Sequence record: KY499642.1
Reading direction: 5' to 3' (one strand)
Length of the DNA stretch: 64,000 bases
A program made the position numbers and the translations under genes. Under the pieces are notes generated by a model. It worked only from the letters and a program-made list of their open reading frames with translations. It was not told the DNA's origin and searched no databases. Positions 37,670 to 64,000 of the stretch are shown here, in pieces. Numbering within the stretch: the stretch's first letter is position 1; the number at the start of each line of letters is the position of its first letter.

Positions 37670-37700
37670 GGAGAGCCACGGCTCTCCCTTCTTTTTTTTT
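37670..37700 (+). terminator. Intrinsic terminator
   Basis: GGAGAGC-CACG-GCTCTCC plus T run. Confidence 0.8.
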
Positions 37701-37711
37701 ATTTGCTATTG

Positions 37712-37742
37712 AAAAATTATGGAGACATATATCATATAAGTG
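37712..37742 (+). promoter_or_regulatory. Class A promoter-like motif (variant)
   Basis: AAAAATTATGG-AGACATATATCAT-ATA-AGTG. Confidence 0.7.
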
Positions 37743-37796
37743 AATTAGCGTGCACACACGCAACAGAATTAAATCACTTAATTGGGAGATAACAGC

Positions 37797-39340: not shown

Positions 39341-39685
39341 ATGGCAATCCGAACTATCACACAAGGCTTATTGAATGACATCCAAGAAGTCTCCTTCGAA
39401 GATGGCATTCAGGTCATTACCGTTCGTTTCGACAACGGTATTGATGTAAGCCAAACATGGAAATGGTCTACACTGGTAGATGCAGATGGGAAAGAAACCT
39501 GTGCGCATGAGGTGATGTGGAAACATATCGCTGCCTTGGGACCGGATACATGTTTTGAACTGCTAGGTAAGATGGCCAAGCATGTCGACGGCGTATCGGT
39601 AACACCATTTGATGGAGCCGCATTTGACACCAACGGTGGTACGATGGCTGAAGACCTTCCGGTTAAGCATCCTGAAGAAGAATAA
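39341..39685 (+). CDS. Hypothetical protein homologous to the N-terminal extension of the NudF at 52183
   Basis: AAGGAGG SD; FEDGIQ..RFDNG..Q..W...HEV...PD..F.L..K..K..G aligns with 52183 residues 1-100. Confidence 0.7.
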   Translation: MAIRTITQGLLNDIQEVSFEDGIQVITVRFDNGIDVSQTWKWSTLVDADGKETCAHEVMWKHIAALGPDTCFELLGKMAKHVDGVSVTPFDGAAFDTNGGTMAEDLPVKHPEEE

Positions 39686-39687
39686 TA

Positions 39688-39720
39688 GAAGAGAGAGCTT
39701 CGGCTCTCCCTTCTTTTTTT
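39688..39720 (+). terminator. Intrinsic terminator
   Basis: GAGAGAGC-TTCG-GCTCTCCC-TTCT7. Confidence 0.85.
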
Positions 39721-39843
39721 ATTTGTTTCAATATTTTTTACTCAGCCTCACTATCCCCGTCATACGGAGAATCCTCAATATCAGCAAGGGTTCAGAGGCC
39801 ATAATATGGGTATATTTATCAATGCCTATAAAGGATTCAACAC

Positions 39844-46382: not shown

Positions 46383-46890
46383 CTTTATGGATAGTATTCC
46401 AGAGGGCATGCATGGCCCTCTTCTTTTTTTATCCTTCGTAGCACTGGTACTTCTTAACACGATAGTTACTCATATGTGGAGAAAGGCACGTAATGCTTAT
46501 TTTGAGTATACCTTGTGGAAGTGTCAGGAAGAAATCTTACGGGATAAGTTAGAGAACAAACGTCTACGTAAAGCGTTCTATGAACGTCGACTAAAGTATG
46601 GTCGGGCAGCAGGTGCGAAGTGTTCTATTGACCCTGAGCATTTAGTTGAAGGTCAAATCGTCTATACGTATCGTACAGACCGTCCCTTTTACGTTACGTC
46701 AGTGCGCGGTCGCTATGGGTTAAACTGTTCAGTGCCGATGGTATGTTATCGTAACATATTCGACACAGACGATGCCGAGTCCGATACTCTCTGGCATCTA
46801 GAAGAGTCAATATTCCTGAAACAGTTTTATACTTACGGTGAGAATATCAATGACTACAACGAACAACAAATCAAATCAATGGCATCCTGA
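46375..46890 (+). CDS. Membrane-anchored protein with possible DUF1653/SH3-like domain
   Basis: TM then GQIVY....PFYVT....PMVCYRN...W....F. Confidence 0.55.
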   Translation: MTNFMDSIPEGMHGPLLFLSFVALVLLNTIVTHMWRKARNAYFEYTLWKCQEEILRDKLENKRLRKAFYERRLKYGRAAGAKCSIDPEHLVEGQIVYTYRTDRPFYVTSVRGRYGLNCSVPMVCYRNIFDTDDAESDTLWHLEESIFLKQFYTYGENINDYNEQQIKSMAS

Positions 46891-47431
46891 CTTTGCTCCG
46901 TCGTTCACTCCAAAAGAGATGATTGACATGGGCATCTTCGAGGGTATCTATACACATGCTATCGAGGGGATTCCAGCAGACTGGTTAAACAGTCCTAAGG
47001 TATTACCTCGTGGAGTTGACCCTGACCCGTCTTTAAACCACTACGGTGTGAAATCAAGACAGAGTCTAAAAGAATGGCAAGAGAAAGGATGGACTACGGA
47101 ACATTCCCCATTAGGTTGGTGGCAATGGTACTGTCTGTACTTCTTAGGTCGTCGCATCCCCGGTGAGGATGAGAAACAAATAGAACGTTGGCGTGGTTTC
47201 ATTTCAAGACATCAAGCGCAAGTAACCAAAGCTTGTCGTTTAGATGACCCTGAGTGTCACCCAAGACAACGTCAAGGGCTTTTGCAGTGGGGTTGGGACT
47301 CTACTACTAAGTTCACTCCGAAACAGCGTGAAGAGAATCTCAAGCGTGTTTCAAAAGCAGCTGGTTGTGAAATCGGCGAGTTCCCGGCAGTGGAACAATA
47401 TGTTGGTAAGCCTAAGTCTTTAGGTTGGTAA
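46850..47431 (+). CDS. Conserved Trp-rich hypothetical protein
   Basis: F.PSFTP.EM...GIFEG.Y, NHYGVKS, GWWQWYC.Y..GRR...D..QI.RW, RQRQGLLQW: widespread phage/bacterial family of unknown function from memory. Confidence 0.75.
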   Translation: MTTTNNKSNQWHPDFAPSFTPKEMIDMGIFEGIYTHAIEGIPADWLNSPKVLPRGVDPDPSLNHYGVKSRQSLKEWQEKGWTTEHSPLGWWQWYCLYFLGRRIPGEDEKQIERWRGFISRHQAQVTKACRLDDPECHPRQRQGLLQWGWDSTTKFTPKQREENLKRVSKAAGCEIGEFPAVEQYVGKPKSLGW

Positions 47432-49655: not shown

Positions 49656-50420
49656 ATGCAATTCTTTATCTTTGGGTTGAAAATCCCAACTGGCAAACGT
49701 TCAGTAGTAATCAATGCACCACTTAAGTGTGAATCCCTCGGTATCATGATTAATGATGAGATGGTCAAGGACTATGACGTTAAGGGACGTTTGAATCTGT
49801 ACGCTAATCTCATCCACAGTCTAGCCCACCTGTACCAATCTGCAAATGTGATGAACAACGCTCTTGTAGAGAACCTGAAGTCGATTCAGAGCGCTATTGA
49901 AGAGCAGGGCGCGTTACTGGAGCTACGTACTGGCTGGTCAAAGAAAATGGTATCCGCAAGTGACGAGTTGGAACTGGAATTCTTCATTAATGAAGTTGAC
50001 CAATACGGCGTTCCGTTGGATGCAGATGATCCTGATGGATATCTGGTTGCGCGTTATAGCATTGATGACTTCGACATGGTTCCAGTTGCCGTTGAACTTA
50101 AGAAGCATATGACTGCCCAGTCACGTGCAGTAGCTTACGAGCAACTGTTTGGTTTATTGCGTGAACACTCTCCTGAGAAAGAAGAGCGCAATGCATGGTT
50201 CAAACAACTGGAAGGGATTTTCAAGAACGACGAACATCCTATCGTTAAGAACACTTACTGGACGCGTAGCTTTAGTAGCGGTGAATTGAGTGTGGAAATT
50301 ACATTCCGCCCGCTTGAAGATTTAGCAGACCTTTGTGAATTTGAAGGTACGTGCGGTCTGAACATTATGAAAGATGGCGAGAAGTCATTCCTACGTGTAG
50401 AGGAGTTACCGGATGCATGA
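49656..50420 (+). CDS. Hypothetical protein
   Basis: 254 aa, AAGGA SD. Confidence 0.75.
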   Translation: MQFFIFGLKIPTGKRSVVINAPLKCESLGIMINDEMVKDYDVKGRLNLYANLIHSLAHLYQSANVMNNALVENLKSIQSAIEEQGALLELRTGWSKKMVSASDELELEFFINEVDQYGVPLDADDPDGYLVARYSIDDFDMVPVAVELKKHMTAQSRAVAYEQLFGLLREHSPEKEERNAWFKQLEGIFKNDEHPIVKNTYWTRSFSSGELSVEITFRPLEDLADLCEFEGTCGLNIMKDGEKSFLRVEELPDA

Positions 50421-51234
50421 AACACCTAAGGTGACAGAGCTAGGCATTACTCACGTGAATGAATCAAAACCTAACGTTCGCTTATTGGTAGCTGGCACAT
50501 TTGCTAACGCTGCACACTTAGCGGTTGGTCAGAAACGTAAGTACACGGGTGAGCCTTATATCGTACACCCTGCGGAAGTTGTACGTATCCTAGAGCAACA
50601 TGGCATCATCGACGGTACGACTTTAGAAGCGGCATGGTTGCATGATGTAGTGGAAGATACGAAGGTTACTGAAGATGCTATCCTAACACTGTTTGGTATT
50701 GATACGCACTACGTTGTCAAGACTGTAACGATGGAAGAGCATCCTGCTAATGTTGACCGTGCTGCCCGTATGTCGCTAGAACGTGCACGTTGGCGTGCTG
50801 GCGACCATCGTGTTAAGAACGTGAAGTGTGCTGACTTAATCAGTAATGGTCGCTCTATCATTGAACATGACCCAACGTTTGCGGTTGTCTTCATGAACGA
50901 AGTGCGTCTAGCGTTATCTGATCTGTTGGGCGCTAAACCATCGCTGCATGCAGAGCTTAAGAAGATGGTCGATGACTACTTCGATAACATGTTGGCTGAA
51001 CGTATTGGTGCTAAGTACTACCGTACTAAGATTATCAATGACACGTCCGGCGTGTATATGGGTGCAAAAGCAAAAGGTTCAGAGTTACGCATTCGTATCC
51101 GTAAACCATGGGATAAGACTACCTCACAGTTGGGTGACCTATTCCCTAGCAATATGCCGATTACATTAACGGCAGATTGTAGAGTGTATATCGGTGAAAC
51201 TTACCATCCTGAATTAGACGTGGAGCTTTGCTAA
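50413..51234 (+). CDS. SpoT/Mesh1-like HD-domain (p)ppGpp hydrolase
   Basis: AH..VGQKRKYTGEPYIVHP, AAWLHDVVEDT, VKCADLISN. Confidence 0.85.
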   Translation: MHETPKVTELGITHVNESKPNVRLLVAGTFANAAHLAVGQKRKYTGEPYIVHPAEVVRILEQHGIIDGTTLEAAWLHDVVEDTKVTEDAILTLFGIDTHYVVKTVTMEEHPANVDRAARMSLERARWRAGDHRVKNVKCADLISNGRSIIEHDPTFAVVFMNEVRLALSDLLGAKPSLHAELKKMVDDYFDNMLAERIGAKYYRTKIINDTSGVYMGAKAKGSELRIRIRKPWDKTTSQLGDLFPSNMPITLTADCRVYIGETYHPELDVELC

Positions 51235-51895: not shown

Positions 51896-52186
51896 ATGCA
51901 CAACTTAAATGGTGAGTTTGCTAAGATTACGGAAGTTCGCACTAAAACCTTTTCAGAAGAAGATAACAGTGCAGTAGTTCGTGTGATGGCGCAAACTGGA
52001 AAATGCAAACTGCTGCTTGTTTGGGATTCCTCTGTTACTGTTAAAGACATCCTGAAACACTTTAAAGAGGGGCAGGAAGTATTAATAGACAAAGGGAAGC
52101 CGTGTGATGAAGACGGCAATATCTTACCACATTACCAATGGCGTGTGGTAAAGACCTTGTCTGATGTAAGCGGGGCTAACAAGTGA
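51896..52186 (+). CDS. Hypothetical protein
   Basis: Start moved to ATG after AAGGAGG. Confidence 0.7.
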   Translation: MHNLNGEFAKITEVRTKTFSEEDNSAVVRVMAQTGKCKLLLVWDSSVTVKDILKHFKEGQEVLIDKGKPCDEDGNILPHYQWRVVKTLSDVSGANK

Positions 52187-53082
52187 AAGAATATGGCAAT
52201 CTAGTCAAAATATGTCAGGACGACTTTGATGATGGTGTTCAAGAGCTGGTACTGAAATTCAGTAATGGTGATAGCATCACACAACGCCGTGTATGGCCGG
52301 ATGTAATCTATCGTGACAATGATGGTAATGATAGTCTACATGAAGTGGTCTACTACTCTGACGAGTTTAAAGAGCTTGAGAAAGCAAACCCTGACGCGGC
52401 ATTTGCACTTATCTGTAAATGCAGTAAGCTGATTGAAGGAACCGACATTAAGCCACAAGCGGTGGCTGTTGAAGACTTCATCGGCGGTCAAGTAGAAATC
52501 CGTGACCAACGTGTTTTACATGAACACTGGTTCCAAGTGATTCAGATGAGCTGTCGTCACTCCCTATGGGAAGGCGGTTGGTCTGAGTACAAAGAACATA
52601 CGTTTGTGAAAGGGCGTGAAGGTGTCGCATGTGTGCTCTACGATAAAGACAGTGATGTGATTGTCCTTATTGAAGAGTTCCGCATCGGCGCTGTCTATGA
52701 AGACAGTCCGTGGATGGTAGGGATTCCTACTGGCGGGTTGGAAGAAGGCGAAGATCCAATGGAAGGCGCTCGACGTGAATGTGAAGAAGAGGCAGGGTTA
52801 AAACCTTACCACATGGAACACATGTTGACTTACAAACAGTCTCCGGGTTTCACTACACATACACAGCACCTGTTCTACGGTTTAGTGGATGCAAGCCAAG
52901 CGCCTGAAAAGGTTCAAGGTTTGGACTCCGAGGGTGAGGACATTCGTGTGGAAGTAATTCCTGCACATGAAGTTCGTTACATGCTCGGTAAGAAAGAGTT
53001 CAAGAATGGTACAGCCATTACTGCACTCCAACAATTCCTAATGTTCCATTACGAATCAGCACGTAGTGTTGTAGAAGCTTAA
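52183..53082 (+). CDS. nudF: ADP-ribose pyrophosphatase (NudF) with extra N-terminal domain
   Basis: Nudix box GGLEEGEDPMEGARRECEEEAGL, LIEEFRIG, SPG, GLDSEGEDIRV; about 100-aa N-terminal extension. Confidence 0.85.
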   Translation: MKEYGNLVKICQDDFDDGVQELVLKFSNGDSITQRRVWPDVIYRDNDGNDSLHEVVYYSDEFKELEKANPDAAFALICKCSKLIEGTDIKPQAVAVEDFIGGQVEIRDQRVLHEHWFQVIQMSCRHSLWEGGWSEYKEHTFVKGREGVACVLYDKDSDVIVLIEEFRIGAVYEDSPWMVGIPTGGLEEGEDPMEGARRECEEEAGLKPYHMEHMLTYKQSPGFTTHTQHLFYGLVDASQAPEKVQGLDSEGEDIRVEVIPAHEVRYMLGKKEFKNGTAITALQQFLMFHYESARSVVEA

Positions 53083-53083
53083 G

Positions 53084-53120
53084 AGATGGCGGGCTTCGGC
53101 TCGCTATCTTTTATTTTTTT
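53084..53120 (+). terminator. Intrinsic terminator
   Basis: AGATGGCGGGC-TTCG-GCTCGCTATCT plus T run. Confidence 0.85.
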
Positions 53121-63361: not shown

Positions 63362-63886
63362 ATGAGTAAAGGTTTCACTAAGAAGCAAGTAGAACAAGCA
63401 AAGAAAACAGCACTAAACAACATCATCTTTTATGGTTCATCTGCGGTACGTGGCGTTACCTTTGAAGGGTTTGATACAATGGAACGCTTACTTCGACCTA
63501 AGAAGTACGAGCAAGCCGTAGAAGAACTTAAACACGAGTTACGTACTGAGAATCGTCCTTACATGTTTTGGGTGGCTGTGTTCCGTGAAGTTGAAGATGG
63601 TATTGAAATCGATACTTACCAAATCATCCACAAAGAACTTACGGTACCTGAGATCGACCTGTGGCTAAACGACTACATCACTCAGTGTATTCATGAGAAG
63701 AATCCTGAATCGTGTCAGGGTTATGGTTGGGTAGGTACGCCGTGTATGTATTTCGACTTCGATGCCGAAGAAGAAAAGCTGATTAAGCTGTTCGAACAAC
63801 AAGGCGTTTATGACCAAGAGAAGCGCCAACGTATCATTCATCAGTATACTGCGGAACAAATCGCTAAAATGAAAGGAAACATGTAA
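63362..63886 (+). CDS. Hypothetical protein, paralogue of 54313
   Basis: FWVAVF, GYGWVGTPCMYFDF, QYTAEQ; start after GGGAG. Confidence 0.75.
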   Translation: MSKGFTKKQVEQAKKTALNNIIFYGSSAVRGVTFEGFDTMERLLRPKKYEQAVEELKHELRTENRPYMFWVAVFREVEDGIEIDTYQIIHKELTVPEIDLWLNDYITQCIHEKNPESCQGYGWVGTPCMYFDFDAEEEKLIKLFEQQGVYDQEKRQRIIHQYTAEQIAKMKGNM

Positions 63887-64000
63887 TGGAATTTACAGTT
63901 TGTCTAGGTGTCCTGCATGAGCCAAGCCAATTTGGTAATGCAATGACTGAAGAACATGTGGTAGCAATGCAGAAGAAGATTGCAACGCATGGTGGCATTT
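63886..64000 (+). CDS. Partial ORF truncated by window end
   Basis: TAATG coupling; MEFTVCLGVLHEPSQFGNAM... open to the end. Confidence 0.6.
   Translation, partial: MEFTVCLGVLHEPSQFGNAMTEEHVVAMQKKIATHGGI

Follow-up and report, generated by a model that had tools for sequence, protein, structure and literature searches.

A domain shared by a small protein and the N-terminus of an ADP-ribose pyrophosphatase in the jumbo Vibrio phage pVa-21, and its possible role as a removable pro-domain

The window, by which we mean the whole 64,000-nucleotide stretch of DNA analyzed, is identical (100%) to bases 1-64000 of KY499642.1, the 231,998 bp record of Vibrio phage pVa-21, with coordinates unchanged. 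The authors who described pVa-21 considered it distantly phiKZ-like, a jumbo phage with SPN3US, CR5, and SEGD1 as its nearest relatives (PMC6472347), and its genome encodes split RNA polymerases. Two plus-strand genes, for both of which the ORF coordinates agree with those in GenBank, are at issue. pVa21_045 (gp045, 39341-39685), annotated as 'hypothetical', encodes 114 aa with a pI of 4.5 and is preceded by an AAGGAGG ribosome site. pVa21_065 (gp065, 52183-53082), annotated as 'ADP-ribose pyrophosphatase', encodes 299 aa; its GTG start overlaps the stop of gp064, and its N-terminus is conserved in relatives. The gap of 12.5 kb from gp045 to gp065 contains a block with the virion structural genes gp046-gp050, while in the relatives of 72% identity (L002-L004) only ~7 kb separate the solo gene from the NudF fusion downstream of it, both within a single plus-strand block.

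The preliminary description of this region had proposed that one domain occurs both alone, in gp045, and at the N-terminus of gp065, and this was borne out by BLASTP (31% identity over 101 residues, E 2e-12). A control profile, built from seven distant metagenomic solo proteins only and excluding all pVa-21-group sequences, recovered gp065 residues 3-92 (E 7.8e-25) and gp045 (E 2.6e-14) from the roughly 263 pVa-21 ORFs, with no further copy among them at E <= 10. Likewise, in a six-frame search of the whole of KY499642.1 the domain was present at two places only, gp045 and gp065. It is confirmed, then, that residues 1-97 of gp065 (52183-52473, plus strand), as delimited by BLASTP, profile, and AF2 model, share a real domain with gp045, in which the core spans approximately residues 9-91 (39365-39613, plus strand) according to the profile matches and AF2. 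The similarity extends slightly past the domain and reaches the first NudF strand, in the GG...D..V.H columns. Because the alignment with the fusion thus runs beyond the domain, it suggests that gp045 may have arisen by a partial duplication at the 5' end of the fusion gene.

The remainder of gp065, residues 98-299 (52474-53082, plus strand), is a complete, intact predicted ADP-ribose pyrophosphatase of the NudF type. Specifically, residues 145-270 constitute a Nudix domain (Pfam NUDIX, E 1e-15), and phmmer aligned solved ADP-ribose pyrophosphatases to residues 99-295 (9dua, E 9.5e-26; 1g0s, E 3.6e-24), corresponding to chain residues 11-204 of the E. coli enzyme (1g0s) or 18-213, with the N-terminal beta domain involved in dimer swapping included. 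The Nudix box, G184-L206 (nt 52732-52800, plus strand), fits the pattern G-x5-E-x7-R-E-U-x-E-E-x-G-U, and G184, R198, E199, E202, and E203 were invariant in the alignment of gp065 with canonical NudFs. Bacterial NudF (E. coli 1g0s and 1khz) aligns end to end with residues 98-299 and shares the Nudix box and the SPG proline, but gp065 carries 97 additional N-terminal residues. The statement that bacterial NudF has no such extension held up, as four canonical NudFs begin within two residues of the gp065 joint. Because canonical NudFs begin at the joint and the NudF part is complete, residues 1-97 are a true add-on, and nothing but the domain stands in front of the NudF part.

The domain comprises about 85 residues, is acidic (pI 4.2-5.0), and has the core pattern I-x-Q-D-D-Y/F-D-D-G-I/V-Q ... 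Q-x-W-E-W-P ... H ... G. AlphaFold models of the domain (pLDDT ~85) showed three to five strands that lead into two or three helices and a final strand; in gp065 (AF2), residues 7-86 form three strands, three helices, and one strand. In the gp045 AF2 model, pLDDT was ~85 for residues 10-85 and dropped under 50 from residue 89 onward, and the C-terminal tail of 23 residues is predicted to be disordered. Relatives of 72-90% identity share this tail almost unchanged, and it is therefore under selection. Searches with the gp045 model returned no convincing fold match in the PDB by Foldseek (best E 0.15) or with VIA wide (best Z 4.7, a KTSC protein), and only pVa-21's own two proteins from BFVD. 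Nothing was found by searching the ESM Atlas with the domain, nor did the domain profile match PDB sequences or Pfam scans of 12 members yield a hit, while a fold search with the full-length gp065 model returned Nudix proteins only. A match of the N-domain to PHROG phrog_1185 was set aside, as it probably reflects the membership of pVa-21 itself. The family is new, without a counterpart of its own in Pfam, the PDB, or PHROG.

The two genes sit in different surroundings. A promoter-like motif (37700-37745, plus strand; GACATATATCAT core at 37724-37735) lies 58-73 nt ahead of gp042, the first gene of the gp042-gp045 unit, which is closed by an intrinsic terminator (39693-39722, plus strand; GC hairpin and T-run). 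The motif has 14 copies at no more than one mismatch, seven in the window (6006, 27985, 30786, 32330, 37724, 53682, and 61893) and seven more in the record, all on the plus strand, intergenic or start-proximal, and mostly ~40-60 nt before a start codon; at up to two mismatches the window holds 21 matches versus 6.8 expected. The element, with an approximate consensus GT-AAAAA-n7-CAGATATATATCAT-n3-AGTG, often occurs just after a terminator. None of the 14 copies precedes a major structural gene, so that the motif is likely of an early class, and it is plausible from this arrangement that the gp042-gp045 unit is early. A search upstream of the structural genes for a late-promoter motif around TATG gave no flanking consensus.

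The neighbors of gp065 encode a thymidylate synthase, an HD-type (HD_4) alarmone enzyme, and DHFR, and are not head genes; an intrinsic terminator with a 15-pair hairpin and T-run (53080-53120, plus strand) follows gp065 directly. Within the same unit, pVa21_061 (50413-51234, plus strand) is annotated as 'GTP pyrophosphokinase / (p)ppGpp synthetase I'; in related contigs, its homologs of 266 aa match Pfam HD_4 only, and a small alarmone hydrolase is a likelier identity for it than a synthetase. Another annotation in the region appears too short. Specifically, pVa21_056 in GenBank comprises only the last 49 codons (47282-47431) of a 197-aa open frame (46838-47431, plus strand) and is probably under-called, as the upstream part reads like a real protein. 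Elsewhere in the record, a second ADP-ribose-related gene, pVa21_133 (118250-118507), encodes an 85-aa macro-like 'Appr-1-p processing' protein; the early-type promoter motif recurs shortly after it in the record, at 118519.

The domain has a narrow range, occurring in a few phiKZ-like jumbo phages only. When 50,697 phage records were searched by tblastn with four family members, pVa-21 and pVp-JHP1101 were the sole carriers; a further phage, pVa-22, is 99% identical to pVa-21 (PMC12685585). A word search returned only close relatives, with both the solo and the fused gene present in every one. An exhaustive profile search added three groups: solo proteins of 84-108 aa, which were the commonest; additional Nudix fusions of 283-320 aa (P0009, P0010, P0012, P0013, and P0019); and non-Nudix fusions of 343-371 aa (P0110, P0113, and P0132), in which the other ~250 residues fall into no Pfam or PHROG family. 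IMG/VR contained one carrier, a 219-kb contig (92% complete) from a jumbo-phage relative, which had a solo copy and in which no NudF was found. Conversely, a phiKZ-like contig (L019) encodes a NudF that is 52% identical to the gp065 core and does not have the domain. The 85-aa gene before this NudF (L019 7725-7982) was considered as a split-off domain and rejected; it looks HicB-antitoxin-like by eye, and a phiKZ_IP-family gene is located two genes off. The domain tree was poorly resolved, support being retained only for the gp045 clade and the clade of IP-like fusions.

In the three non-Nudix fusions, the domain is embedded between a leader containing ..L-A-L-E-S/Q.. and a V-S-T-E/G-F (or V-S-M-E/T) motif. 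The arrays around these genes contain paralogs that share the leaders and motifs of the I-S-T-E/G-F type without the domain, one of which is 42% identical to the C-terminal part of P0113. Because the same leaders occur without the domain, these arrays argue that it is dispensable in leader-bearing paralogs. A connection of the non-Nudix partners to the phiKZ_IP family (PF12699) is suggestive only. A neighboring paralog, L005_393, scored 22 bits against PF12699, below the cut-off of 27, in a phage with phiKZ-type split RNA polymerase; P0110, P0113, and P0132 themselves did not match PF12699, and the profile-profile comparison of leader-bearing paralogs with phiKZ_IP proteins was not significant (hhalign, probability <3%). 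The arrays themselves (L005 9190-18275 and L012 6153-10986) consist of paralogs of 266-393 aa from uncultured phiKZ-like phages. Their leaders contain ..LALESA.. followed by ISTEGF, SQEGF, STENF, or SAESF and look like multi-site prohead-protease propeptides, and two of the array members have C-terminal membrane helices.

A motif of related appearance marks the joint in gp065, where V94-A95-V96-E97 precedes D98-F99 (52462-52479, plus strand) and forms a putative prohead-protease cut site after E97, as judged from alignment, AF2 model, and the published motif. We aligned eight Nudix fusions, from six lineages that are 31-47% identical, with four plain NudFs. All eight fusions had [A/G]-x-E in one column (AVE, AVE, AVE, ALE, GME, AFE, ATE, and ATE), in a linker that is otherwise variable, and the triplet falls directly before the start of the plain NudFs, two residues ahead of the canonical N-termini. 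With flanks, the joint reads VAVE/DF in gp065 and IAVE/SF, VAVE/SF, LALE/SF, LATE/SF, or VATE/EF in relatives; it is degenerate in gp045 (AFD), with AFE in P0004. The F at P2' adds no support for a cut site because it is inherited from NudF. In the full gp065 model, pLDDT fell below 50 only at residues 97-100, that is, at the joint.

Such a sequence corresponds to the specificity of known head proteases. The SPN3US prohead protease gp245 recognizes A-X-E, cleaving on its C-terminal side with a preference for S at P1' and for V or A at P4, and strips N-terminal propeptides of 20-254 residues at sites including AVE-75, ALE-111, ATE-127, and ATE-130 (PMC10052503). In phiKZ, the cut that gp175 makes in gp86 falls at SQE-122 (PMC5694885). 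In pVa-21, gp171 (157606-158391 of the record, beyond the window) is 38% identical to phiKZ gp175 (E 3.4e-36), and UViG G001 likewise gave a match to gp175 (E 5e-34); a search of pVa-21 for the T4 gp21 family (PF03420) gave no match. Near the end of the window, the start of gp085 (63886-64000, the gene continuing to 64317, plus strand) shows a faint, diverged relationship to the head protease (phiKZ gp175, E 0.013). This gene, pVa21_085, is annotated as 'prohead core scaffolding protein' and recalls SPN3US gp117, a diverged protease paralog (PMC5694885).

Comparable motifs occur in virion proteins of pVa-21. The internal head protein gp241, which belongs to phiKZ_IP (PF12699, 221 bits), has IAAE/SF, VGLE/SF, and IAVE/SL within its first 125 residues, the virion protein gp238 has VGTE/SF and IAAE/CF, and the ISLE/YF of the capsid protein aligns to the proven VATE-130/YY site of a Seoulvirus capsid protein. 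A wider form of the motif was found 13 times in the pVa-21 proteome versus 4.5 expected, and nine times versus 2.3 expected within the first 160 residues, an enrichment that is partly circular because the motif was defined from these same examples. The N-terminal carriers were gp065, one 102-aa ORF, the capsid protein, gp235, gp238, and gp241, of which the last four are known or likely virion proteins.

Taken with the position of the motif, these observations lead us to favor, tentatively and at somewhat less than an even chance, a reading in which the shared domain is a portable N-terminal module that serves in gp065 as a putative removable pro-domain. Under this proposal, gp065 would be made as domain, flexible linker, and complete NudF, and this precursor would enter the prohead. 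There, the S80-type prohead protease gp171 would cleave after V-A-V-E97 and free an ADP-ribose pyrophosphatase of normal length, residues 98-299, which would stay in the head and could enter the cell along with the DNA. gp045 would be a diverged stand-alone copy of the module, expressed from the early-looking unit. What the sequences establish is the paralogy, the intact NudF, the conserved joint motif, the protease gene, and the related motifs in head-protein families; packaging and cleavage are inferred, and the domain would act either as a targeting signal or as a co-delivered passenger. The fuller scenario, in which a capsid-loaded pro-enzyme is injected with the DNA and destroys ADP-ribose signals or NAD-breakdown products before phage genes are expressed, is in our estimation rather unlikely. 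Several findings count against the pro-domain reading itself: gp065 lies in a nucleotide-metabolism block, gp045 lies behind an early-looking promoter-like motif, a motif of three residues carries little weight as evidence, the leaders of the array paralogs do without the domain, and the solo proteins, which make up most of the family, have no cargo to deliver. For substrates of such proteases, however, a place among head or late genes is usual but not a strict requirement.

The same findings make a cytoplasmic role a serious rival, because the context of both genes is metabolic and early-looking, even if we consider it somewhat improbable overall. Here the domain would be a partner-binding, oligomerizing, or auto-inhibitory module that stays on NudF, gp045 would bind the same partner or the fused domain, and A-x-E would simply be linker structure. 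The location of gp045 and gp065 in early or metabolic-looking regions, the tail of gp045, which is conserved yet disordered and so resembles a short binding motif, and the prevalence of solo copies all fit this explanation. It leaves unexplained, however, that the sole conserved feature of the linker is a protease motif at the canonical NudF start, and that in other carriers the domain lies between protease-like motifs. Those same signs of cleavage would also serve if the domain were a small effector, such as one inhibiting a host defense or another host protein, that is packaged in a protease-split polyprotein and also made free, early, as gp045. T4 IPI*, a processed and injected anti-restriction protein, is a precedent, the leader-bearing paralogs present the domain as a dispensable insert rather than a targeting signal, and the domain is acidic, small, and fast-evolving, with gp045 in an early-looking unit. 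Nevertheless, no leader precedes the domain in gp065 to direct the protein into the head, and no likeness to known inhibitors or sponges emerged from the fold, PDB-profile, and Pfam searches; we regard an effector as quite unlikely.

The preliminary description had, by Rosetta-stone reasoning, connected the domain to ADP-ribose or NAD metabolism, which it would target or sense, or else had it localize the hydrolase, with gp045 as a possible decoy or sponge. Only localization is retained here, since it fits the putative pro-domain. In favor of a domain that senses or binds ADP-ribose or NAD-derived molecules, with the solo copy acting as a decoy or sponge (e.g., against Thoeris-type signaling), NudF is the most frequent fusion partner (the pVa-21 group, P0009, P0010, P0012, P0013, and P0019), and pVa-21 also has the small macro-domain gene. 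Yet most copies are solo, P0110, P0113, and P0132 are fused to unrelated partners with no nucleotide link, the finding that the preliminary description itself regarded as speaking against its interpretation, the 92%-complete relative has a solo copy and no NudF, and a phiKZ-like NudF has no domain; for these reasons the domain is not tied to ADP-ribose enzymes. Moreover, neither the fold nor the sequence searches linked the domain to nucleotide-binding or sponge proteins, and likeness of the domain to Tad1, Tad2, or macro proteins was absent from the Foldseek PDB, VIA, BFVD, PDB-profile, and Pfam results, which a new binding fold could escape. We therefore consider sensing very unlikely, and gp045 as a sponge found no backing in the searches run. 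Still more remote in our view is a role in directing proteins elsewhere in the infected cell, such as to a phage nucleus or early infection vesicle, which would suit a phiKZ-like phage with split RNA polymerases but would leave the protease-like joints unexplained; moreover, we know of no import signal of such a kind.

The mechanism that we propose, with the domain as a removable pro-domain, is a variation on two established themes, prohead-protease propeptides and capsid-targeted cargo. The N-terminal part of gp065 is akin to the propeptides of SPN3US gp47, gp50, gp53, and gp54 and of phiKZ gp86 in its N-terminal position and length of ~100 residues, as well as in the A/S/G-x-E boundary, the V at P4, the S or D at P1', and the presence of a phage-encoded S80 protease. 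It differs from these in that the cargo is a metabolic enzyme, the gene is outside the head-gene block, and cleavage is a prediction here; moreover, the pro-part, unlike those propeptides, would be a folded, independently occurring domain with a free-standing paralog. The head of T4 carries the ADP-ribosyltransferase Alt and IPI-III, and its prohead protease frees cargo after Glu, so that in Alt, too, an enzyme of ADP-ribose chemistry resides in the head, as is proposed for gp065. Vibrio phage KVP40 reportedly encodes NatV, in which an NMN adenylyltransferase is fused to a Nudix ADPRase. Like gp065, NatV comes from a Vibrio phage and joins an ADPRase to an N-terminal partner, but that partner is a known NAD-salvage enzyme, whereas the partner in gp065 has no detectable family or nucleotide link. 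Finally, the T4 capsid targeting sequence (CTS; cited in PMC5694885) is a peptide of 10-20 residues with L/I-x-E, in contrast to the folded domain of ~85 residues with A at P3 in gp065, and the two bear no sequence relation.

Even without packaging, the analysis defines a new family of acidic domains of ~85 aa, for which the simple Rosetta-stone reading fails. The protein that giant phiKZ-like phages eject into the cell amounts to tens of megadaltons, and to our knowledge an activity is known for almost none of the proteins involved. If the proposed processing of gp065 is true, a metabolic enzyme with a protease-removable pro-domain would provide both a defined head cargo and a candidate loading tag. 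Because many bacterial defenses act through NAD cleavage and ADP-ribose-derived signals, it would also offer a concrete idea of why a phage might pre-load an ADP-ribose hydrolase. Under the fuller scenario of a capsid-loaded pro-enzyme, the domain would lend itself naturally to tagging foreign cargo that is to be loaded into phiKZ-like heads.
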